A stretch of DNA of 64,000 nucleotides from Lama guanicoe (lineage: Eukaryota), in contig MU054541.1 in assembly GCA_013239625.1 (NCBI GenBank), positions 248,001-312,000 on the forward strand, read 5' to 3'. Position 1 is the stretch's first letter. Each line of letters begins with the position of its first letter. The position numbers and the translations under genes are program-made. Below the pieces are notes generated by a model. It was not told where the DNA came from, searched no databases, and saw nothing but the letters and a program-made list of their open reading frames with translations. Positions 1 through 24,067 of the stretch are shown here, piece by piece.

Positions 1-167
1 GCCTGCTCCATCTGCAGCCAGAGGTGCTGCCACAGCTGGCATGTTCTGTCCCTTGACATCTCTCCACTGTATCTGGGGCTGGGGATACCAGCCAGAGGAT
101 GTGCACCCCAGGTGGATCCCTCCGTCCTTATGGCCCTTCATTTCAATGTGAAGATCAGAACCCAGTG
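1..167 (-). CDS. BTN3: Butyrophilin-3 IgC exon, 5' part (continues beyond window start)
   Basis: Acceptor TTCCTTCTACAG at 168-179. Phase-1 translation [56 protein letters not shown] is typical of BTN3A IgC. Not in the ORF track. Confidence 0.93.
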
Positions 168-295
168 CTGTAGAAGGAATACATGAGCCTCAATCCTTGG
201 CAGCCTCCTATATCAGTGAGGGTCTCAACAGGAATCAGATGGCACACTCACATTAGGTAATTAAAGTAGGGTTTCATTAAGAAGCTATTCACGGT

Positions 296-418
296 GGGGA
301 GGGTATAGCTCAGTAGTTAAATGCGAGTCTAACATGCAGAAGGTCTTGGGTTCAATCCTCAGTACCTCCAGTAAAATAAATGAATAAACCTAATTCCTAG
401 CACCCCCCCCCAAAAAAA
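296..418 (+). mobile_element. tRNA-derived SINE (vic-1-like, camelid)
   Basis: GGGGAGGGTATAGCTCAGTAG...GGTTCAATCC A/B boxes and A-rich tail; imperfect TSD AAGAAGCTATTCAC / AAGAGCTGTTCAC. Confidence 0.8.
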
Positions 419-839
419 GAGCTGTTCACAAAAGTGCAGATATGATGAGGGAAATAGAGCAAAGCCCCTGGGCCAGGAACACTGTTAGCACCCATCCCTA
501 CACCCAAAGGGAGGTGGGGAGAAAGCCAACTTAAAGACCTAAAAGGAGAGAGTCATGTATGAGAGGATCTTCATAAGAGCTGTGATCTTTGGGAAGAGCA
601 TGCAGCCAGCTAGAGGTGGTCCTGCAGAGAGAAAACCAGGAGATTGAGTACCCAGACCTCTCTCTCCTCCCTGCCTTCCACCCACCTTATGCTATGATTC
701 TCTACTGACCAAACCCAGCCAGAACCAACCGGGCAAGAGAGTGCCCTGAGAAAGAGAAATGCAACACTTAACATTGGACATGGACCTGGTCTTGGTGTTC
801 TTCTGTGGAACCCAAGCAATTTCATGGAACATCAACATC

Positions 840-1265
840 AGATGGGGGCAGTTTGTCACCACATCAGGTCAAGACAAAAACAAGACCAACAGTAATTGTG
901 TTTGAACATAGAGAAAAACGCAAACACTGTTCAAAGCACAACCATGACCAAATATCCCCCTGTCCTGGCTGTGAGTGATGCTGCTCCTTTACCAATCCCT
1001 GCTTTAGCCTTACTCTAACCTTCCTCCTGGATAAGGTTTATGAAGATACCCACTCACAGAATTACATCCTCCCCCACCTCCCTGAGAGCATCCAATCTAG
1101 AGCAAAGCCCGCTTCCATAAACTTTGCCCCAAATCCCCTAACAGAAGCCCAAAGCCTGTACCAAGTCTCTCTGACAGCTTCTTCCTGAGACCCTCACGTT
1201 CCCACTTGGCATGTGCTCTCTCCCTCCTGCAACAAGGATTAAAGCCAATTGGTACAACTGCAGGT
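840..1265. mobile_element. ERV LTR-like fragment in BTN3 IgV-IgC intron
   Basis: LTR-like composition only; boundaries approximate. Confidence 0.4.
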
Positions 1266-1691
1266 GTGTACCTGGGGGCCTTTGGTTGGAGAACAGTGGT
1301 AGCACAGATGCTGTCCCTATGGGTCAGTCTCCCCAGCATGCACCTGGAGGGACCCCAGAAGCCATGTGGAACGCAATTGAACCCAAACAACCACACACCA
1401 TCTCCAAGGAAGTATTTCCTTATCCTTCCCATCCCTGATGTTCCACTTCCCTGCTTAGACCCTGGCAGCCAGTGGGAGGGAGACATTGATATTATAGGAT
1501 GCAGAAGGGGTTCTTCCTGGAGGAAGACCTGCATCTTTCACAAGGGCCTCAGAGAAACAAAGTTGGAAGGCAGTGGAGGCAGTTCCCAGTGATCAGCCAG
1601 GAATGCTGAGAGGTGGATTTGGAACGTGAACTCTGCCTCTGTCCCCGGATCCCATGGAGGAACAAGCTCAGAACAAAACCTGGAGGCTCAC

Positions 1692-2039
1692 CTGCAACCT
1701 TGAGCTCCACCAAGGCTTTTTCGTAGAAGTTGCCATCTTGGAAATAACACAGGTAGTTTCCACTGTCAGAGGCTCTGACGTTGCGAATTCGGAGAGCAAC
1801 CTTCCCTGCAGTGATGTCATCTCTTAAAATTTCAGTTCTCCCTCGATACTCTGCAATCTGTCTGTCTTCTACTTCCTTCCCACCTGCGTACATGAAAACT
1901 ACCTGCCTGAGGCTGGACTGCACCCACTTCAGTTCCATGGTCTCCGCGCTCATCTTTGGGGACAGGTGACAGGGCAGCTCAGCGTCTTCACCCACTATGA
2001 CCAGGACGGGCCCAGGGGGTCCAATCACAGCAAACTGAG
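1692..2039 (-). CDS. BTN3: Butyrophilin-3 IgV exon (348 bp)
   Basis: Acceptor CTTTTGCTGACCAG, donor GTGAGC, phase 1/1. Translation [39 protein letters not shown]...[25 protein letters not shown] has both Ig cysteines and the conserved Trp. Confidence 0.97.
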
Positions 2040-2276
2040 CTGGTCAGCAAAAGGGGGAAATTCCATTAGAGGGAGTTGGGGCCATGATGGTAAGAGGGTG
2101 TCTCAGGCAGAAAACCCTAGAGAGGAACAGGATCCTGACAGAAGGGCATCTGTCTTAATGGCATGTGAACCTTCAGTTTACGCTGGGACTTCCTGGAATG
2201 AGGAGTCTAAGGTTCTGACTGGGTGCTAACAGGTAATTGTTTACTTCAGATCCATAAAAGTAGAATCGTTCCCTAC

Positions 2277-2361
2277 CTGAGCAGGGGGTAAGCAGCTCGA
2301 CCAAGACGAGGCAGACAAGGAGGTAGAGCCGAGGGGAATCTAGGGACCTGGCCGTTTTCAT
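2277..2361 (-). CDS. BTN3: Butyrophilin-3 leader (signal peptide) exon, 85 bp
   Basis: CACAG|ATG, MKTARSLDSPRLYLLVCLVLVELLTPCS, donor GTAGGG; splices in frame to the IgV exon (G|CT = Ala). Confidence 0.92.
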
Positions 2362-3419
2362 CTGTGATGCAAACAGAGAGACACCAGAAGGAGTCAGGGA
2401 GAAACGATGAGCTGAAAAAGATGGAGAATTCGGCGTGGAAATCTCCATCTCCCCAGGGCAGTCTCGGGGCAAACACTCCATCACTAGTGTGATGACCCAA
2501 GACCCTTTTCTGCCAAAATGTCTGCTTGGGAGTCTCTTCACCTTTGAGTTCCAACATGGAAAAATCTCCCATAAAAATATGTATGTTTAGTGTACAGACA
2601 GTAACCCTAACCCACCAGGAAAATCTTTAGCTCTACTACATTAATATGTTCAGAATCCTTTCACTTGCTCACACTTCCCCAGCTACGCCAGGTCCAAGCC
2701 TTCACCATCACACTGATTAATACAAGACCCTCTTCTCTGGGTCCCTGATTCTGCTTGTGTCCCCAGTAGTCTCAGCACAACATCCAGAACATTCCTTGAG
2801 TCACATCCGGTCACTTTTCTACTTGGCACCTTCCAGTGGCTCCCGTTTCACTCAGAGTAGATGCTGAAGTCCTTCCAATGGCCGGCGTGACCCTCCAGGA
2901 CCTGGCAGTCCTCACTTCATCTCCCCTGCTCTCCCTGTCTCTGTTCCAGCCACACTGCCCTTCTTGCTGGTCCCTGAACACAGCAGGACAGAGTACCTCT
3001 ACAAAGGATATTGGTCTATTTTGTTTCCTGATGTATAAGAAGCTTGTAGAACAACGTGCAGTTAACATGGAGCCCTTAGTAAATATTTGTTGAATGAGTG
3101 AATGGTTACATATTAACCCATCAATACTCACTAGCATTTTATTTCAGTTTAGATCATCGGATGAATTGGTTGTCATCCAATAAGAGAGGGGGTGGAGACT
3201 TTATAAAGATAAGAATTTTTCTCCATAATGACAGTGCCCTTTGGTCTGGCTTAGAGAGCAGAGCCTGGCCTCCTGTGCTCCCACTGGGACTTGCCTATAT
3301 TAATGTGTTAATTTCTATTTTTCAATAAAATGGTTTCAAGGGACAAGCCCGTCCTGGGTATGTAAGTATAAGAGTTGCAACTTGATGTTCCTTGGTGCAC
3401 TCTTTTCACAATTGTTATT

Positions 3420-12017: not shown

Positions 12018-12535
12018 TCAGTGGCAGATGGTCAGAGGGGTTGGGTGATAGAACCAGAGGCAGAAGAAAGGCCGGAGGGGCCCAGAGAAGGAGGCCTGGG
12101 GGAAAGTGTAGATGTGGGACCCGTCAGCCCCACTATAGAAGGAGACATCCCCAGCCTCATAGTCCACGAAGATCCCCACCCGGCTCAGGGGCTCGCCCAG
12201 GGGGAGGGCGGTCCGAGGGGAGGTGAGGGCTTGATACTTATTAGCATAGAGTTCCATGGCCCAAAATCCATTCTGAGGCGACTCTGTGATTCCCCATGTC
12301 CTTTCCACGTTTTCCTCACAAACCCCCAGCTCCCAGTAAGTCCTGTCACCCACGTCCACCTCCCAGTAGTGTCTCCCCGAAGAGAAGGACTCATGACCCA
12401 GCACACAAGGGTCAAAAAAAAACCTTCCAGTTCTCTCGGGGAGATCCTGCCACGTATTTCTCCGCCTCACACTCCGGTGATCTTCAGACAGAAAGAGTTC
12501 AGGGTAGGCAGTGTCTGGATCCAGAGTCACGTGAG
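12018..12535 (-). CDS. Butyrophilin-like gene, terminal B30.2 (PRY-SPRY) exon
   Basis: Acceptor CTTTCTGCAG. Uninterrupted AHVTLDPDTAYPELFLSED...GRHYWEVDVG...VGIFVDYEAGDVSFY...FSGPLRPFFCLW...PLTICH*; resembles BTN1A1/BTN2. Confidence 0.93.
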
Positions 12536-13719
12536 CTGCAGAAAGAGTGAGCGAGAAGAGACACCTGGTCACCTCTGGCATCTCAGGACACTCAGTGACT
12601 GGGAAGAAGGGGAGAGAAGCTGGTCTGAACCCATAAAGTTCCCTTCCTTCCTCCACAAGATAGCTGGAGAGATAAATATGTCCGCAAATGTCCTGAAGAA
12701 CACCTCAGAGAGCTCCCAGGAGAGCTCAGAAACTTACCAGGGGGAGCTAATCCAGATTCCCTGAATCCAGAGGCCCCAGGTCCCTGGGAGCAGGGGTGGC
12801 TAATCATGAACCTCCAGCTCCCCACCCCACCCTCTCAAGCCCCTCTCATGCCACCTCACTATTATTATTTATTTCATATTTCCCTCCTCTTCTAGAGAAG
12901 GACCTGAGAAGGTAGAGACTATGTTTGGCCATCTTTGCATCCTCACCATTTAGTGCTGTCAGACCCCGCTTGCAATGGATGCTCGATAATGTTGGCAGAA
13001 TGAAGGGCTAAGGAAGGTCCTGTAGACAGCCTCCAGCCATGCCTCTCTGCCAACCTGAAGCCCCAGAGGGCTGTGTGGAGGGCTACTTGGCTAGAGATTT
13101 TTGGCCAATTGTAAAATCCCGGATCTAATCGATACCCATCTTTAACAAACAGTCCCAGATTCTCATAGCTTAGAAGCATCGTAAGGGAGAAACTTTATGT
13201 GTTCACTGATTCCTGGCCAATTCCAGGCCTGGCCCAGGAGAAACCTTCTGCATAATATTTCTACTCCATTTTCTGCTATTTTCTGACTGAATACAGAGTA
13301 GAGTGAGGCCCTAGGTTGACATAGAACAAAGCTCCCACATCCCCATATGATCTGTCCTGAACACTGAAGAGATGGAGAAATATACTTTTATTATGTTTAC
13401 CTAATGGGATATTGAGGTCTTTTGTTACAACAGTTAGCCTGCCCTGACAAATACAAATCATGACCCAAAGTCAACTCCCTGTATAGACTGTTTCTATGGA
13501 CATTTCTTCTACGTGCTGGAAACTGAGCACTCTCATATGGTAAAACACAGGCCCTGCCCTGTCAAGGAACTCAATCTTGAGACAAAGAAACAAATAATAC
13601 CGCTTCAAAGAGAAAGTCTTTCAATTGCACCAATTACTTGAAATTACTGAGACTTCTTCATGTTCAGGACAAGGGATCACAGTAGATCTATTCCAGACCT
13701 GCACCACAGGATGAGGGGA

Positions 13720-13930
13720 GGGAGCATAGCTGATGGGGCCAGACTCCCTGGACTTTTATCCCAGTGTCACCACCTCCTGGATGTGTGATTTGAAGCAAGA
13801 TTTTCTTTACCCTCTTTGTGGATTAATTTCTTCCATTGTAAATGGCCATGATAATAGCACACCTCTTAGGGCTGTGGAAGAATATACATTAAGCACTCAG
13901 ACCTGCGCCTGGTGTATAGTAGTAGCTGCT
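13720..13930 (+). mobile_element. MIR SINE (degenerate)
   Basis: TGTGTGATTTGAAGCAAG...TGTAAATGG...ATAATAGCACACCTC MIR-like core. Confidence 0.55.
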
Positions 13931-13951
13931 TAAAAAATGTTAGCAACTTCC

Positions 13952-14038
13952 TTTTTTTTTTAATTTTATTTTAATGGAAGTGCTGGGTTTCACACATGCT
14001 AAGCACACACTCTACCACTGAGCTATTCCTCCACCCCT
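13952..14038 (-). mobile_element. Internally deleted vic-1-like SINE
   Basis: TAGCTCAGTGGTAGAGTG on minus strand; flanking repeat AATGTTAG(C/T)AA. Confidence 0.65.
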
Positions 14039-14557
14039 AATGTTAGTAATTTTAAAAGACCATTTACTCGATTTTATTTATCCCTTATTTTTAGGGTTCT
14101 TCACTGGGGGAACTGGTTATAAAGTGGCACCTCTGCTCCGAGGGGAGAGCAGCTGAGGTGGACGGAGTCGCTAGATCTCCTCTAAGATGCACATTACCCA
14201 CTACAGACTGAATGGCATTTGAATGAAGGCTTTCCCATTGTACTCTTAGGTCTATGATGCTGAAAATATTGAGGTGTAGGGAAACCCAAGACAGAAAGTG
14301 GATGAGGAGCACTTTAAGAAGGAAAAAAAAAAAAAAGGTTTAAACTGCTGGAAAGAAAAAAAGGCCCAGATGCTGAACAGAGATTGGGATAGCATTTGAC
14401 CTGGAGGCCATGTGAATCTTCCCCGGGTTTCCGTACAGGTACCACCCAGCCAGGCCATTATTTGGAGCTAGGAGATGGAAAAAGACCAGTAAGATTTTTT
14501 TTTTTTTTTATAATGGAGTCCTGAGCCTGAGACCTTAAGAATTAAACAGTCACTCAC

Positions 14558-14584
14558 CAGCATGGGACCGAGCTTTTCTCCAGT
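14558..14584 (-). CDS. Butyrophilin-like gene, 27-bp juxta-B30.2 exon (WRKARSHA)
   Basis: TTTTCTATTGCAG|ACTGGAGAAAAGCTCGGTCCCATGCTG|GTGAGT; matches the BTN1/BTN2 'WKKATLHA/WRRTFLHA' exon; phase 1/1. Confidence 0.85.
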
Positions 14585-17500
14585 CTGCAATAGAAAACAG
14601 AGAGGTGAGCGCTCCCTGGCTGGAGTCATACATTGCTTCGCCCTTTCTGTGTTCTGGCTGCCTTCCCTCATGTTCCTCACAAGGATGGTGTCCAGGCAGA
14701 GGGAAGTCAGATGAAATGTACTCTTCTATTTCCCCTTCCTGTTTCCTAAGTAAGGGCTTGGACGGCACTGGGAGCTCTTTATTCATCTCTCCTCTTTCCC
14801 CAAATTAGATGACTTTGTGCCTCAGTAGCTGAAAGGCACCAGCTGATGCAAATGCCTGTGAAGGCTGCCATCACATGGAGCACAGCCCTGAAAACAGGAC
14901 AGAACTATGCTGGATTCACTCTTCTGTTCATTGTGGTCATGGTTCACTCGTTCCCATGGTCAGGCGCCTGACCTGGGAGAAGGTGATCCTGTCCTCTCTG
15001 GCATCTTTTCCAAGACCTCGTACACTGTCCTGCATGCAGTAAGATTGGCCAACAGCCTGGAAATCTGTCTCTTTTATCGCGTTCATCTCTGCAGGAAGCA
15101 TCTATTTTTCATAGTTTCTATGTCACCTCTTGCTGTCATAAAGGACTCCTACACTTTTTGTCTTATACCTTTACCTGGGAAGCTGCTAGTGTATTCTGGG
15201 CACTATGGCTTATTGTCAATTAGCTCACGGCTCTTCTCTCTACCCCAATATGTTGTTATCCACGACTCATTAGCCAAGAAACTCAAAGCTGGTTAATTAA
15301 CCATTCAATGTCCCTGTTTCTTCATCTGTAGGATAGAGATGTGACTAACATTTGCTACTGAAGTTATCTGGGTAGGACTTAGAATAGCACCTACAAAAAT
15401 ACTAAATCACTGTGCTGTATGCCTGAAACTAACACAATGTTATAAATCAACTCTACTCCAATTAAAAAGATGTTTTTAATCTAAAAAAGGCATTTACAGT
15501 TATGCAAGGTCATCAAAAAAAGAAAAAGATACAGAGGAGCAAAAAGAATGCATTTCTAGAGCTGACCTGTTGTATGGGCTGCACACTTGGTTTCTACCTG
15601 CCTCCTCTGCATCTCTACTTTGATCACACATAGGCTCCTCATCTTAATGTATCCTGACTTCCGATTCTGTGCTACCTCCCCCCCTTGCCCCCACTGCCTG
15701 CTTCTCTCTCGGTTTCCCCGTCATGGTAATTGACAATTCTATCTTTACAGTTTCTTAGGACTAAGACCTTGGAGTCATCCTTGATCCACTCCTTTATTTA
15801 TACCTCACATCGAAATCTATCAGCAAAGTCTTTCTACCCTTTAAAAAAAATAAATCCAGCACTGACCCCTTCTCACCACTTCCAGCACCCACCCTTGGTT
15901 TCCCTGCAGCAGCTCCCAGCTGGCCTTTAGGCTTCTATCCTGCTCCTCCTACCCTTCCCCCGAGCCTAGTCTCAGTTTAGCATCTAAAGTAACTTCTCAA
16001 AGCATAACTCAGGTTCTGTTCTTCCTCTGCTCAAAACCCATTGGTGGCTCCTTTCTCAGATGCAAAGCCAATGCCAGCACGTTGACTTTCAAGGTCCTCC
16101 AAACCCCCTGATACTCCCTCCAGTTTTCCTGGTCACTCCCTGTCCTCTAGCTGCCCTGGCCCCTTTGTTACTCTTCAAAGAAACCAATGAGCTTCTGCCT
16201 CTGGATTTTGGCACTGTGGTTCTCTCTACTTGAAATGCTTTTCCCTAGCTATTCCTGTGGCTTGCTTCCCTACTTCATCATCACCCTATTTTATTTTATA
16301 TTTTTTTATTGAAGTGTTTATGTACAAATATTAAAAGTTACAAGTGTACAAATCATTACCCTGTTTTAAATTGCACCTTCCAGTGCAATATTCTCTTATC
16401 TCCCAGGCACATATCATCATGTGCCAAACTGTATATTCCACTATTTCTTTTTTTTTTTTTTCTTTCTTCTTACTCTAGAAGGTAGGTGCTTTGTGAATGG
16501 CGCATTCCTGTTGTGTTCATTTCTGTGCCCCTGGCACCTAAAAGAGTAATTGGCACATAGTTAATGGTCATGGATCTTTGTTGAGTTGGTAAATGAATGA
16601 CTAACTGAATGACTAAATGAACTGAATAGAGAAGCCCTGAAGGAAACTGGAGAGTGATGGGTCCAGGATGAGAATGAGGGAACAGCCTCAGAAAGAAGAA
16701 AAGACATCTACTCTGTTGAAGTCAGAGCAAACAGGTCAGAAAGGGCAGGTGCAGGGCATGGGGCAGGAAGTTTGGCCCCTCCCTTCTAGTTTCTCTCTGA
16801 GATGGGGGTTGCTTCACCTTCAGAGTCGTGGGAAAAGGATGTGGTGATGAGGATCACAGCTAGTGTTCACTGAACTTAACTGCGTGCTGCCTTCTGTACT
16901 GGGTGTTCTCCATACTTTGATCTCATTTCCTAGCATCTGCTCAATATAGTAGTTGTAATTAAATCAATTTTGAGGTTGGAAAAATAGAATTTCAAAGTAG
17001 TTTAGGAGCCTGTCCTGGTTTGTCTGAATGAGTAGAATAAACAAGGTCAACCAGGTGTGGTGAACAGGCAGAGGAAAGGGGCACAGAAATAGATAGAAAA
17101 CTGCATGCTGTATTTGAGGCACCGCAGGTGGTGTGGTTAGACCAGTGTGGAGCTGGGCATGTCCGGGAATGTCCAGGGATCGGGCAGAAATAGGGCTGGA
17201 CCATCAAGTGCTTGCAATGCAGAGATGAAAAGTGCATGGACTGAACTTCATCTAACTGCTGTAAAAACTTTGGTCAGACAAAAATCTTATTCCCAAATAC
17301 ATTGGGAAATATATCTTCAAACTCCTGAGGGAGCCAATTTAAAAACATTAGCATTAAAAGTTAAAATCTGTCATTAAGGACTTCATTTGTTACTAATGCA
17401 ATTATGAACTTATTTTGGAACCTGGAATCACTCAGCAATAATTGATTACGAGGATGTTAAACTGGTGATAGAGAATCCGCTTAGGTTGTGTTTGTTTAGA

Positions 17501-17789
17501 TTAAAATCTATATTAAGACAATTTTTTTAAATTGAAAATTCTTTTAGAATTTACAAATGTCCATAGCCTTCCCCGCACCAATAAGAATGCAGAAGGTGAT
17601 GGGAAGCCACAGAAGTTTTGGGAATTGAGAGGAATGCAATCAGACATCTGTTTTGGTGAGTTTACTCTGAAACTCTAGACTATGGTCATGCTGTAAACTT
17701 TGCAGAAATAATGTTTTGTTTATGCTGGTTGTTTTCCAGATTTCTTGTCTGTTTCCTAATATTTATTTAAACTGAAAGCCTTTTTTAGA

Positions 17790-18055
17790 TTTTATTTTTT
17801 ATTGAAGTGTAGTTGACTTACAGTGTTAGTTTCAGGTGTACAGTGAAGTGATTCAGTTGTACATATATATACATAGATATTTTCTTTACAGATTCTTTTC
17901 CATTATATGTTATGACAAGAAGTTGAATATAGTTCCCTGTGCTATACAGTAGGTCCTTGTTGTTTATCTCTTTTATATATAATAATGTGTATCTGTTAAT
18001 CCCAAACTCCTAATTTATTCCTTCCCTGCACCCTTTCCCCTTTGGTAACCATAGT
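17790..18055 (-). mobile_element. LINE-1 3'UTR fragment
   Basis: Reverse complement matches the 3' end of the L1 at 9.8-10.1 kb (TATAGCACAGGGAACTAT, GGTTACCAAAGGGGAAAGG). Confidence 0.8.
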
Positions 18056-18348
18056 TGTAAACTGAAAGTCTTAAAATGAAAAGGGTAGCAGTAGCTCTTG
18101 TGAGGAATGGAAGCAGCCTACTGTTAAGAGAAGGGCCTTGGTAAATGAACTCCAGGAATCTGCGGTAAAAGAAGAAAGAAAAATTGAGGGAGGTAGTTTA
18201 TGCCTGAGAAGAGGCCCTGGACTGAACAGTAAAAGGACTTGTCCTGAAGGGAGGAAAGAAAGGTGCCCACTTGGGCGGGTGGTGGCAGCATTACACAGCA
18301 GCAGGTAGAGGAGGAAGGGCAGTTTAACGGGAAAGGAGATGGAGTTCA

Positions 18349-18466
18349 TTTTTTTTTTTAATTTTTTTAACTTTTTTTTTCTTTTTTTAACAGAGGTACT
18401 GGGGATTGAACCCAGGACCTCCTGCATGCTGAGTATGCACGCTACCTCTGAGCTATGTTCCACCCC
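18349..18466 (-). mobile_element. tRNA-derived SINE (vic-1-like)
   Basis: TAGCTCAGAGGTAG...GGTTCAATCCCCAGTACCTC on minus strand, polyA tail, flanking GGAGTTCA/GGAATTCA. Confidence 0.8.
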
Positions 18467-18788
18467 TACTGGAATTCAGTGTTGGCCACAGGTTTGAATA
18501 ACCTTTGAGGCATCCATGGTATGTGAACAGAGATATTGGGATTATAAGGGTTAAGTCCAGATTGTGTAAGAATGATCAAGGCCTCAGGGGAAAGAATCAG
18601 GTTCATCTAAGTTACCTATTAAATGAAGCAGATAAAGTCTTAGAGGAAAAACAAAAATTCCAATTTACTCACCATCCACCTTCTGGGCTTTCCTCCAGCC
18701 TGAAGTGGAGCAAAGAAACCTCATGAGATACATTGCACAAGAGAGGGTCTCAAGTCGTACATACAGGAGAGGGAAGCACAGAACTTAC

Positions 18789-18809
18789 AGAGTTCTCTTT
18801 GGAGTTTTT
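18789..18809 (-). CDS. Butyrophilin-like gene, 21-bp heptad exon (EKLQREL)
   Basis: CCTTTTGCAG|AAAAACTCCAAAGAGAACTCT|GTAAGT; canonical BTN coiled-coil mini-exon. Confidence 0.82.
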
Positions 18810-19132
18810 CTGCAAAAGGACAAGAAATGAATCAGTACCATCCATAGGAAACAAGCCAGGTTCATATGGACAGGGCCTCTGGAAGCCCTCTTCCTGGCTT
18901 ATGAGTGCAGTGAGTCCTGGGAGCTGTCCCAGAACTGGGGAAGCAAGGGCACAGTCAGGCACACAGCTTGAGGGGAGTAAAAGGATAGGGTTGGTGGTAC
19001 TGAGGGAGGAAGGACTGCACGAAAAACCTCAAGTTCAAATCCCCTTGATCTGCTTTGTTCTTGCCCTCTCCCTTCTCTGTCCAATCCATAGTCTTCTTTG
19101 GATCCACTGCCTCGGTCTTCTAATTGCTTTAC

Positions 19133-19297
19133 CTTTGGTCCAACATTCTCGCGCTTTCTCCCGGTGAAGTTTCCAGATAAAACCAAGAGCAGCCAGCAGG
19201 AGAAGCCCCAGAAGAAGCAAGAGTGAAGTCTGAGCAGCTGCCCAAGGGAAGTCCTTCAGGAAGAGAGCACCTGAGCCAGAAGTGCTGGGTGTTATTC
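19133..19297 (-). CDS. Butyrophilin-like gene, transmembrane exon
   Basis: Acceptor CTTTTCTCTGCAG (alternative in-phase acceptor near 19271), donor GTAAAG. Translation ...LFLKDFPWAAAQTSLLLLLGLLLLAALGFIWKLHREKARECWTK. Confidence 0.8.
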
Positions 19298-19784
19298 CTG
19301 CAGAGAAAAGCAGGGAAGAGCCAAACACTGTGGTGCTGGAGCACACAGAGGATGCCTCGGGATTCTGTGGGGTTCCTGTTCCAGCCCAGTGGCAGAGGGG
19401 CCTGGCTGGGAGAGTGACCCCAGCTTTGCCCCGTTATCTTCCAAGAGATGGTTGGGAAAACAAGATACCGTGAAAGTCATCATGAAAATACATAAGTACT
19501 TAAGTAAAATAAATAAAACGGTTCTGGGACCCAGTATTAAATATTTGGACCATTAAAAAGTCTTTCACAAGTCTTCCCCTACAGTGTTGAGCAGAAAGCA
19601 GGGAGTGGTGCTTTACACAAGCAAATATTTGATAAACAGAGCATTTCCCAAGAAATCCTGCCTAATCAGTGCTTTAAAAAAACCAAGAGGAATTTCCAGA
19701 AATGATTCAGACCATTTGCAAAGGGGCTGAAACGAAGAGAGAGAGGACTACACACGAGCACAGCCCTTTAAACAGCATCCTCAC

Positions 19785-19970
19785 CTGCTTCCTTCTGTCC
19801 AGCAGTGTCTTCAGTGGAATCCCATTGTTGGGAAAATGGTGAGTGTTCAGGGCCTCTGACTTGGCATCTCCTGGTGGAGAAGCTACAGGCCTCCCCTCCA
19901 TGGTGGTGATGAGTCCCGTCCTTGGCCAAGCACATGGCTGAAGAAGATGAGTCCTGCAGCTCTTGTACCT
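19785..19970 (-). CDS. Butyrophilin-like gene, putative 186-bp ectodomain exon (collapsed IgV remnant)
   Basis: Acceptor CCCCTCTCCCCCACAG, donor GCAG|GTGAGG. Phase 1/1 and stop-free: EVQELQDSSSSAMCLAKDGTHHHHGGEACSFSTRRCQVRGPEHSPFSQQWDSTEDTAGQKEA. Both ends resemble the BTN3 IgV exon at nucleotide level. Confidence 0.55.
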
Positions 19971-20058
19971 CTGTGGGGGAGAGGGGACGGAGAGCTCACT
20001 GTCCTTCACACCTCGATTGGAAAATCAGGAGTCACTCCCTGCCCACTGAGCTGCTTAC

Positions 20059-20120
20059 CAGCCAGTAAGAGGGAGAAGAGGTGGAGACAGGGATGAATAA
20101 AGGAAGGACACTGGACTAAC
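20059..20120 (-). CDS. Butyrophilin-like gene, putative leader exon
   Basis: TTTAG|G TTA GTC...CTG GCT G|GTAAGC gives (M)LVQCPSFIHPCLHLFSLLLA; phase-1 end as in BTN leader exons. Confidence 0.5.
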
Positions 20121-20600
20121 CTAAAGTTGGGTCATGCCTCTCAGAGACAGAAATTTGGGGCTGTTTTGGCTTCTGCTCGATTCCCAGCACCTAAAACTGA
20201 GGGTTGGTAGATCTCCAGGTAAAATACGTTGCATTTTAACTTGCTAAATCGGGGTACTTTATACATAGGAGACTCTCAGTAAATATTTGTGGGATGAATG
20301 AATGCTGTTTTCTGCTTGGAGCTTTAATAAGAAAACAGAGAATCCAAGCAAGGCTGCAGGCAGAGGGAAGCTGGCCTGGGGAGACAAGGGAAGCTGAGTT
20401 GAGCTGATAAGCAGAGAGCCCTGTCTGTTTGCTGTGAGCCAGATCCTGTGCTGAGCAGAGAGGTAGGATCAGAGGAGTAGAGAGAGGAGTCCGAGACAGC
20501 CTGGGCCTTTAAGGAGCCCAGTGACCTGACACTCACACTGTCCATCTCCCTTGTCCACACCTGCTGGCTGTCTCCCCACCGCCAATTCTCAGGCACTCAC

Positions 20601-20660
20601 ATTTTCTTCTGATTGACTTGGTCTTGGGATGACTTTGTGATTCAGACACTGGGCTGGGCC
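20601..20660 (-). other. Putative 5' exon of the butyrophilin-like gene, ending in AT of a split start codon (5' boundary unknown)
   Basis: AGAAGAAAAT|GTGAGT strong donor; AT plus G of the next exon forms an in-frame ATG with A at -3; in-frame TGA 14 codons upstream. Confidence 0.4.
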
Positions 20661-21539
20661 AAGGCTCCAGTCAGGACTCTCCACGGCTGGTCTCTCAGGC
20701 TGGAGCACCAGCAGAGGCCAGGGAGTACCCCTGGGCTGGGAGTTGCCATTGGCAGGGCTCCCCTGGGGACTCCACTTAGATGTGGGTCTGGCCAGGGTGC
20801 CATGTCTCCACTCCTGCCCCCCGTGCTGTTACCAACTATGATGGGGGCGAACTCTGGACTGTGAACCCCATTTACCTTACATTTATGATGTAAGATATCG
20901 ATGCTTTCAGGGATAGGAGCCAGGTCTAGAGATCGGCCTACGTAGACAGACCTGGGTTGGCCAGTTTCACCACAGCTCTGCTGAATTGGAACTCACACCG
21001 CCTGGCATGAGGCCTGTGAACTCAGTGGACCTGTTGGCAATATCTGCTGTGTTGCTGGAGTGAGAGAGAAGGTGACGTGGCTGGGGCACCTGGAAGTGGA
21101 GAACAAGATGGAGAAAAAGAATTTTATATTAAAACAAAACCAAAAAATAAAGCACAATGCAGGATACGTCTGATGAATTCTTTTCACATCTTCAGCCCTA
21201 CAGGGATTTGCCGGAAGGTAGGAGACAATGGGGACAAGGAGCTGGTACTAGGCAACAAGGCTGGTCTGGGATGGAATCGAAGAATGTACACTTTTCTTAT
21301 TAGAAGAGAATTTTTGCGGGGGGCAGGTAGAATGGGTAATGCTATGGAAATGCAGCACCAAAGCAGGTAGAACCCAGGAAGGCTACAGAGTAAAGGAGTC
21401 ATCAACTCTTAATCCCCTCGGTCAGTGTCAGTGGGATAAATGCTTCCCTTCAAAATCTGAACCTCTCTCTGGCTATGGCAGCATTGAAGACCAATAGACC
21501 CAGATGCTGGTTGTAACCGTGCTCTTGACCAAGGAGCAC

Positions 21540-21790
21540 AGACAGTCTTTTGGCTGAAAGTGTGAGAATTTCTAGGGTTACACAATCTGGATTCACGTTT
21601 GGCTCCACCGGCTTCACTAGCTGTGTGATCTTGGGCATAATATTCACCTCTTTAAGCCTCCTCTACAATATGGGTTGAATAGTAGTAATGGCTTCCTGGG
21701 AAGGCTGTGAGGATGGAACCAGGGTGTGCACGTGAAATGGAGCCTTGGGGGCAGTGATCGGTACAGAATGCTCAGTAAATATTAGTTATG
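21540..21790 (+). mobile_element. MIR SINE
   Basis: CACTAGCTGTGTGATCTTGGGCA...GCTCAGTAAATATTAGTTAT. Confidence 0.7.
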
Positions 21791-22819
21791 GCCCTATTAA
21801 CTCTTACTCCAATTTACCCAATATTGTGGTTATTTATTAACATCTAGCTAGCCCTCTAGACAGCAGATCCTTGAAAAGAGATGTCTAGGCTTGTTTATCT
21901 TAATATGTACTTATCTCCCCCTCCCCCACCACAGTCTACTCCGTACTTTTTTCCAGTCTGTTGACCTCTTCTAGTGCTGATTCAGCCATCTTTGCAGTCT
22001 GGCTTCTGGTGGGGACCTACCAAGAACAGCAAAAGATCCAAAGGGTGGAAGGACAGAGACTCCAGGATGTCTATGCCCCTAGCTCCATCCCTACTGGGTA
22101 GCAGGTGACAGTGGCTGCCATCTTGCTCCAGAGCCCCTGCTCTGTCGGGACACTTTTCTATGGCTACAAATCTCACCTGCTTTGAAAATACTCTCCCCTT
22201 GCTCCTTCAGACCCATTGGTGATAGCTCCTGCTGTAGTCCCAGAGCAAGTCACCCTGGAACTCCACTACTCCTATCAACCCAAACATTTTAGAGCCTAGG
22301 TTTTCTCAAATTCATAATATCCCTGATCTCATCTGGTTCCCTGCCCTTTCTCCTTATCCCTTTACAGAATACTGTTGAGGCTAAGATGCTTTAATTGATG
22401 TATCCAAGGTCATAGCTAACTGGTTTTCTGATTTTTAGTCTAGTGATCTTTTCCTGCTTGACTCTGAGAGTCTGAGAGTCTTCCTAGAGGGAAAGTCCTG
22501 CTTCCCAAGTATTTGGAGACCAGAATTGGCACTGATGCATTTGCATCAGGCAGAGAGGTCTCCTGCTCAAGGAATTATTCCATGCATAGAAAATGAAAGC
22601 AGTCCCTGGTGCTGCAAAGGCAGGGGCCTGGACGGGACCGGCGACCTCTGGGCACAGGAAAGGAGTGCACTGAAATGGACTGGAGAGCTGGGGTCGGCAG
22701 AGAAGGTGGAGGGCAGGGCTGCCGTCTCACTTCTGGTGAGACTTCTTGTTGTGGGCAACACCCCTTACACTTGTTGGTAGTCTCCTCCTTGCTTGTCCCG
22801 TTCCAGCCCTTCTAGTCTA

Positions 22820-22955
22820 CCACTCTCCTCCCTCCCCTTCCTCCTGACTCTCCCCTCTCCCTTTCCTCCTCTCCCTCGTCCCTCCCTCTTCCTCTTCTAG
22901 GCTCCTGTCCCTTCCCCAGCTTCTTCCACCGCCTCCGCCTCCTTTTCCCTCTGAT
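22820..22955 (+). repeat. CT-rich low-complexity polypyrimidine tract
   Basis: Almost exclusively C/T for about 130 bp. Confidence 0.7.
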
Positions 22956-23409
22956 AATAATCTTTAGGCTTTTCTGTCCCCCGGTGGCCAATGTGCGTCA
23001 CTGCAGGTGCCTGGGAAACAACCTCCATCTCTCAACCGGTATGAAAGGAGTGGGGAGTAAACAAACAGCCAAGCTAAGGGCTGTGCAGTGCAGAATCCCA
23101 AGAACTGAAATACGTGGGGTTTTGACTCAGGAGTTACATCTGTACGTCTATTTTTACACCAACTGAGGTTTATTTCAGTCCCCAGCCCTTTTCTGCTTAA
23201 TGGCAGGACCTTGATCGTAACCAAATCGGGCTACACCTAAGCTGACTTAGTCCATTCAGGACTTTATCGAGTAATTTGGGGGCTCTTCATTTTCTCGGAA
23301 TTGTATCTCAGTCTGAGGGCGAAGGGAAGACCTCTGTCTTGTCCAGGTACCAGTAAGAAGTCGCCTGCTGGCATCTGCCCACTTGGGATCTGCTTCTACA
23401 TCCTTGTAC

Positions 23410-24067
23410 ACTGGTTTCTCAGCGTGGAACCCTATAAATACCCACTTTTTCCCTCTGCATCCTTAAAGGAAAGATGATAAAATGGCCGCACTTAGGCTAA
23501 CAAATTCTTGGCTTTATGCTTTCTGCTTGCTTTTAGAATGGTCAGCAAACCTGACTGACCGGACACTGTTGCCAGCCTCAGGCCCATGTTAAAGCTAAGG
23601 TTGTTGACTTTGCTGTTTTTGCTTTGCTCTGGCAACTAAAATTTATAGTCATGTTTTCTGAGTCATTCTTCAGGTAGAGAGTCATGGAATGATAAATTCA
23701 GGAGAATGGCCTCACCCTTCAGAGTTCCTCCGTGGTGCTAGATGAGTCTAAGCAGATAATAGAAGGTCATGGGCTGATGACCTTCCAGATCACTGGAAGG
23801 TCCCATGATGCCAGACTCATCAAGATTTAGAAGGAAGTTTCATCAGAGACCCTTGTTGATTGTTATCACCTTTTATGTTCCAACCCCTTTGTCTATAGAA
23901 TCACTAAGCCCCAATCCCAAGATGGGTTCACAGTTTTGAAGGTATTAGCCTGCTGTGAGTTGCCTTTGCCCAGCAAAGCAATAATCTGCCTCTGTTCTTC
24001 TAAACTCTAGGGCCATATCTCTGTGTTATTTGGCTTGTCAGGGACATGGGCTGATCCTTTGGCAACA
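23410..24067 (+). mobile_element. ERV solo-LTR-like element
   Basis: LTR-like body with a TATA-like element and GCAATAA, ending GGCAACA; 5' boundary approximate. Confidence 0.5.

Follow-up and report, generated by a model that had tools for sequence, protein, structure and literature searches.

Outside primates, alpaca is the sole model for phosphoantigen sensing by Vgamma9Vdelta2 T cells. Its butyrophilin (BTN) cluster has been described as single copies of BTN1, BTN2, and BTN3 (PMC7348870), and one butyrophilin, BTN3A2, is a naturally truncated protein reported to pair with a full-length partner via its transmembrane (TM) and juxtamembrane region (PMC11969061). Here we analyzed a 64,000-nucleotide (nt) stretch of Lama guanicoe DNA (assembly GCA_013239625.1, contig MU054541.1, positions 248,001 to 312,000; hereafter, the window) that contains, on its minus strand, a butyrophilin-type gene devoid of immunoglobulin (Ig) exons. 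The gene occupies ~8 kb of the window and lies ~10 kb upstream of a BTN3 gene on the same strand, i.e., within the BTN cluster of the extended major histocompatibility complex. A preliminary description of this DNA, made from the letters alone, had proposed for this position an Ig-less gene whose product combines a TM anchor, juxtamembrane heptads, and B30.2, and this outline was borne out. We estimate at about three in four the probability that the locus is a conserved eutherian gene for an Ig-less, TM-anchored, tail-less B30.2 butyrophilin of 302 amino acids (aa), or 327 aa if an upstream exon is included.

The locus was compared with canonical BTN/BTNL genes with respect to IgV, IgC, signal peptide, TM exon plus heptad mini-exons, B30.2, and cluster location. 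Six exons (186, 165, 21, 27, 27, and 518 nt; Table 1) are supported, and the TM exon and mini-exons are all of phase 1-1 with AG/GT borders. As in canonical members, phase-1 heptad mini-exons of 21 and 27 nt come after the TM exon, and the terminal exon encodes a B30.2 domain closest to those of BTNs, the nearest solved chains being BTN2A2, BTN3A3, and BTN2A1 (E 2e-63 to 3e-58). When joined locally from the ATG at 19935, the exons encode 302 aa with a single difference (E215K) from alpaca isoform X1 (XP_015107239 and XP_072800812, 302 aa; P0276), which points to DNA of alpaca or of an animal very closely related to it. The product of the 186-nt exon is 100% identical over 50 aa to alpaca XP_031544118.1, and 172/173 residues of the B30.2 exon are identical to alpaca RefSeq. 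The joined model was checked in local scripts only, while homology searches were performed with single exons or with database proteins P0006 and P0276. RefSeq isoforms contain the 21-nt exon in X1 and skip it in X2 and X4, and the exon at 14558..14584 is skipped in X3 and X4. The alpaca isoforms other than X1 lack the 21-nt exon, one of the 27-nt exons, these two together, or the TM exon. The annotated isoform without the TM exon (P0152, P0006; 247 aa) skips the 165 nt in frame and is present in all four camelid species; it would be a soluble protein comprising the N-terminus, juxtamembrane region, and B30.2.

Orthologues were collected by a HMMER scan with the B30.2 exon, a word-indexed protein search, and cluster look-ups. 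The scan returned short, nearly identical proteins whose last residue coincides with the end of the exon, and RefSeq or GenBank models of the same build were found for Vicugna, three Camelus species, Bos, Bison, Bubalus, Capra, Ovis, Oryx, Cervus, Odocoileus, Rangifer, Choloepus (two-toed sloth), Oryctolagus, Lepus, Ochotona, and Condylura (star-nosed mole), with partial models for Loxodonta (elephant) and Delphinapterus (beluga). Complete products of 334 aa (P0169) and 309 aa (P0178) are encoded by Logan contigs of 1292 nt and 1371 nt from cattle and another species. Since the gene spans ~8 kb in the window, contigs this short represent spliced transcripts. In a maximum-likelihood tree of 58 B30.2 domains, the Ig-less proteins formed one clade (100/99) outside those of BTN1A1 (100/100, with wombat), BTN2 (100/99, with koala), and BTN3 (100/99), with branches about as long as in BTN1A1 and BTN2 but shorter than in BTN3. 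No group emerged as a strongly supported sister of the Ig-less clade; a monotreme group joined it at 95/75, which is below the tree tool's mark for strong support. In 13/13 clade members no residue follows the B30.2 domain, compared with 47-57 residues in BTN1A1. Shared build, tail-less end, and monophyly place the gene in a eutherian group of Ig-less proteins that databases call "BTN1A1-like."

Conservation within this group is concentrated in the juxtamembrane helix and B30.2. Between alpaca and other orders, identity is 71-87% for B30.2 (83% with elephant), 73-88% for the juxtamembrane helix, 49-84% for the TM exon, and 32-66% for the N-terminal segment, which is in frame with that of bovids, deer, sloth, rabbit, pika, and mole. 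An alignment of 12 orthologue models contained 108 invariant columns, and the WRKAQ motif encoded by the exon at 18699-18673 was invariant (12/12). Arguing from protein conservation and kept reading frames, we read these data as strong, if indirect, evidence that purifying selection acts on the cytoplasmic part.

The absence of Ig domains was examined in two ways. First, tblastn was performed with 22 proteins (480-560 aa, mostly full-length BTNs), of which the N-terminal 300 residues served as queries. These queries found the IgV exon of the window's BTN3 at 1e-40 and gave no Ig-like match in 18900-25500, where the top-scoring hits (E 0.14-1) either were due to chance or fell on the TM exon. 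Second, profiles built from 73 BTN IgV domains and their IgC neighbors were run against stop-free pieces in the three minus frames of 19298-25500. None scored better than E 1 (best IgC, E 2.3), while the same profiles detected the downstream BTN3 exons at 4e-53 (IgV) and 1.2e-17 (IgC). The claim that neither an IgV or IgC exon nor a relic of one lies between the TM exon and the transfer RNA (tRNA) cluster was therefore upheld by both searches. Likewise, no Pfam V-set domain was found in any exon of the gene, and the orthologue models contained no V-set or C2-set domain apart from the merged yak and red-deer predictions considered below. We also considered, and rejected, the possibility that the 186-nt exon derives from a collapsed Ig exon, as the IgV profile gave E 6.5 and tblastn an 18-aa chance match at E 80; nor does this exon contain any Pfam domain. 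As judged from the models, the Ig-less state is not a camelid novelty but is common to at least five eutherian orders, and is therefore ancient.

The protein consists of a short non-Ig N-terminus, one TM helix running into the juxtamembrane helix, and the tail-less B30.2. Taking the 5' end from database models, the first 25 aa of the supported N-termini are hydrophilic (mean Kyte-Doolittle -0.83); these N-termini apparently lack a signal peptide and contain no N-glycosylation sequon. The sole hydrophobic stretch is in the TM exon, whose most hydrophobic 19-mer averages 2.48, with five K+R on its C-terminal side and one on its N-terminal side; in tblastn, this exon also matched the TM exon region of a BTN1A1, albeit weakly (E 0.75). 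Given the positive-inside rule and the topology of BTNs, we infer that the N-terminus faces out (type III) and that B30.2 is probably cytosolic. AlphaFold2, run with a shallow alignment of 12 rows, predicted one helix at residues 68-128 covering the TM and juxtamembrane regions, with a predicted local distance difference test (pLDDT) of 82-92 over residues ~71-110. The B30.2 domain was modeled poorly (mean pLDDT 42.5) and only the helix is usable. A search of the ESM Atlas with residues 1-131 gave no usable match.

Several points weigh against a conserved, functional gene. In the hit lists, no clade member was found among primate, rodent, carnivore, bat, horse, or pig proteins, so the gene is dispensable. 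The beluga models (P0324, P0326) are short (181-190 aa), with the TM exon and a partial PRY, and may reflect either gene decay in toothed whales or an incomplete assembly. Splicing, 5' end, and expression in this species are taken from database models only; the existence of multiple RefSeq isoforms is an indirect hint of splicing, as are small sequencing runs from a related organism, tentatively classed as RNA, that contain 64% of the words of the last exon. It would be unusual for a hydrophilic head of ~70-95 aa to be inserted N-out (type III) when no signal peptide precedes it, and any function is pure inference. Such points could also be read as signs of a transcribed but functionless relic, left when a butyrophilin lost its Ig exons, in which the open frame is a leftover and the gene models were propagated by homology. 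A relic would fit the poor conservation of the N-terminal segment, the shortened beluga models, the seeming absence of the gene from the annotated proteomes of many orders, the lack of protein evidence and of reads from this species behind the models, and the fact that alpaca is credited by reviews with BTN1, BTN2, and BTN3 only (PMC7348870). However, at least five eutherian orders keep intact frames with an identical exon set and stop position, the B30.2 branches are as short as those of BTN1A1 and BTN2, and spliced transcript contigs exist for cattle and another species. Together with the 108 invariant columns and an alpaca-elephant B30.2 identity that is probably far beyond what ~100 million years of neutral drift would leave, these observations make a relic unlikely.

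A second question was whether the gene has the exact structure first drawn for it, i.e., a type I protein of 326 aa with a start codon split between 20602-20601 and 20120, a signal peptide encoded by 20120-20059, and no exon at 18699-18673. A script check showed that the seven minus-strand intervals of that model do have AG...GT borders, sum to 981 nt, and join in frame with a single terminal stop, and a signal peptide from the hydrophobic 20-aa product of its second exon would ease translocation of the N-terminus. Five of the seven exons, including the last four, which had been called solid, are also backed by homology. Of the three 5' exons about which the preliminary description had itself expressed doubt, the 186-nt exon proved to be supported by homologues, but the two upstream of it were not. 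The acceptor at 20120 has 9/20 pyrimidines, compared with 15-18/20 at the six supported acceptors, and the 20-mer encoded by 20120-20059 shares no 6-mer with any of 326 fetched proteins, orthologues included. The database models instead begin at the conserved Met codon 19935-19933 or use the exon at 22216-22177, whose ATG is the alternative start. This exon would add 25 in-frame residues to give a 327-aa product and matches the N-terminus of the dromedary model KAB1261209.1 (P0273, 327 aa), which alone among the fetched proteins has a 6-mer in common with it. The 27-nt exon at 18699-18673 was overlooked, and the junction residue Y in the predicted YWRKARSHA, which is absent from every annotated isoform, arises from that oversight; no annotated isoform skips this exon alone, and its WRKAQ motif is invariant. 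Considering this evidence, the structure as first drawn is very improbable, and the supported product is instead the 302- or 327-aa protein described above.

An equally slight chance is given to the possibility that "Ig-less" is an annotation artifact and that an Ig ectodomain exists outside 19298-25500, past the tRNA genes or in a masked stretch, or is acquired by read-through or fusion, for although fused yak and red-deer models hold a BTN3 IgV and the window contains twelve N runs, none of these runs lies within 12018-25536, the IgV of the fused models sits downstream of the B30.2/juxtamembrane part, and orthologue models from 15+ species plus two full-length transcript contigs have no V-set or C2-set domain. 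The fused models, from Bos mutus (P0288) and Cervus elaphus hippelaphus (P0323), join the Ig-less gene to the BTN3 leader and IgV, and their IgV matches that of the window's BTN3 at 88/100 and 104/116 residues (88-90%). Since this IgV is an exon of the next gene, the yak and red-deer models are merged predictions, and they indicate that the Ig-less gene and BTN3 are also neighbors in ruminants.

Table 1. Coordinates of the Ig-less butyrophilin gene and flanking features, numbered from the first letter of the window
Feature	Position	Strand	Remarks
Candidate first coding exon, 40 nt	22177..22216	-	ATG 22216-22214; donor G|gtgaga; ends in phase 1; matches dromedary model
186-nt exon, phase 1-1	19785..19970	-	Start ATG 19935-19933; ~50-aa non-Ig N-terminal segment
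Transmembrane exon, 165 nt, phase 1-1	19133..19297	-	
Juxtamembrane heptad exon EKLQREL, 21 nt	18789..18809	-	AG/GT borders
Juxtamembrane exon C-WRKAQKVD, 27 nt, phase 1	18673..18699	-	ag|GC...G|gtgagt; tblastn with orthologue proteins (P0167, P0168, P0152)
Juxtamembrane exon D-WRKARSHA, 27 nt	14558..14584	-	AG/GT borders; matches orthologue models
B30.2 (PRY-SPRY) exon, 518 nt	12018..12535	-	Stop directly after domain; Pfam PRY 3.4e-20, SPRY 3.2e-27
Downstream BTN3 leader-like open reading frame	within 2176-2586	-	
Downstream BTN3 IgV exon	within 1552..2043	-	Pfam V-set 5.6e-16
Downstream BTN3 IgC exon, beginning	within 1-189	-	BTN3A2-like Ig-C domain, Pfam 4.9e-21
tRNA cluster, 13 genes	25536-51914	both	Trp x2, Met x3, Arg x3, Ser x3, Gly, Gln; masked N runs between

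The neighboring BTN3-type gene is represented by its 5' part at window positions 1-2600 (minus strand), and its remainder extends past the left end of the window. On the other side, upstream of the Ig-less gene, the first tRNA gene is at 25536.

With regard to function, the most likely mode of action, which we propose only tentatively, would be that of a B30.2 module tethered to the membrane, which would pair, either with itself or with full-length BTNs, by means of its TM/juxtamembrane helix and B30.2. The reported pairing of BTN3A2 through its TM/juxtamembrane region serves as our working analogy. Such pairing would tune the trafficking or the inside-out signaling of BTNs; alternatively, the Ig-less protein might recruit a cytosolic ligand of its own. 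The predicted homodimer of residues 60-302 scored 0.44, versus 0.52 for one control, a result that speaks neither for nor against self-pairing. To compare ligand pockets, we used the basic pocket positions of BTN3A1 (H351, H378, K393, R412, R418, and R469), numbered as in the BTN3A1 literature. By alignment to BTN3A3, these positions read D, E, T, Q, R, and C in the Ig-less protein, so that R418 alone is kept, and the acidic D172 and E199 are conserved across the clade. Since five of the six basic residues are replaced, two of them by conserved acidic ones, the protein is presumably not a phosphoantigen sensor of the BTN3A1 type, and since it has no Ig domains it should not itself be able to act as a T-cell-receptor ligand. 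A more ambitious proposal, which we regard as improbable, is that where only one BTN3 is present, as in alpaca, the protein would be a third, purely intracellular or membrane component of the BTN2-BTN3 machinery that, through pairing of its juxtamembrane helix and B30.2, sets the stoichiometry, trafficking, or threshold of phosphoantigen signaling, or that its conserved acidic pocket would instead sense another, cationic metabolite or a protein. If this were true, the apparent absence of the gene from annotated primate proteomes would accompany the primate BTN3A1/A2/A3 expansion.

Models of this gene have been public for years, and, as the preliminary description had anticipated, automatic pipelines name it "BTN1A1-like" in four camelid species and in many other mammals. 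The gene is therefore annotated, but it is uncharacterised and misnamed. We found no literature on an Ig-less butyrophilin lineage, and BTN reviews and evolution papers were silent on it, in a search that did not include the primary alpaca study (Fichtner 2020 PNAS). The label is also shared by other entries. Expression papers on sheep and buffalo list "BTN1A1-like" LOC genes that could not be tied to the Ig-less gene, and a pig "BTN1A1-like" entry has, in each of two tables, a false discovery rate, fold-change, and P value identical to those of BTN1A1 and is probably not a separate measurement. A second, ruminant-only "BTN1A1-like" clade (Dama P0238, Oryx P0262, Ovis P0266, Capra P0076; long stem, 0.40) has a coiled-coil plus B30.2, with no Ig Pfam domain in the listed isoforms, and is distinct from the Ig-less gene. 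"BTN1A1-like" is thus a misleading label for a distinct lineage, and the locus would add to the BTN cluster a fourth gene, directly upstream of BTN3 and conserved since the eutherian radiation. Since its product retains the TM, juxtamembrane helix, and B30.2, i.e., the parts used for BTN2A1-BTN3A1 intracellular crosstalk, it is a candidate modulator for reconstitution experiments. Should it prove inert, the value of these results would be limited to cleaner annotation.

Among known systems, BTN1A1, the milk-fat-globule butyrophilin from which RefSeq takes the name of the gene, resembles the Ig-less protein in being single-pass, in its exon order (TM, phase-1 mini-exons, one B30.2 exon), and in its B30.2 domain (60-63% identical). 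However, BTN1A1 has a leader, IgV, IgC, and a tail of 47-57 aa, and groups, together with a marsupial sequence, in a clade of its own (100/100). Orthology with BTN1A1 was rejected, since that clade excludes the Ig-less gene and the tail of the latter is 0 aa. BTN2A1/BTN2A2 and BTN3A1/BTN3A3, which make up the phosphoantigen-sensing pair, share with it the juxtamembrane helical region and the cluster, and provide its closest solved B30.2 structures. The BTN2A2 match is chain A of 8hjt, which was deposited with a "Butyrophylin 3" chain and which we take to be the alpaca BTN2-BTN3 complex. Unlike BTN2 and BTN3, the Ig-less gene belongs to a separate clade and offers no T-cell-receptor surface, and it differs from BTN3A1 at the aligned pocket positions (H351D, H378E, K393T, R412Q, and R469C). 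TRIM proteins and pyrin likewise use the PRY-SPRY fold as a cytosolic ligand-binding module (TRIM11, 2e-56; pyrin, 3e-50; TRIM21, 3e-47), but these are soluble RING/B-box/coiled-coil or PYD proteins, whereas the Ig-less protein is membrane-anchored by a BTN-type TM exon. Finally, the human BTN3 paralogue BTN3A2 is its mirror image, in that BTN3A2 keeps the Ig domains and has no B30.2, whereas the gene described here keeps the B30.2 and has no Ig domain.

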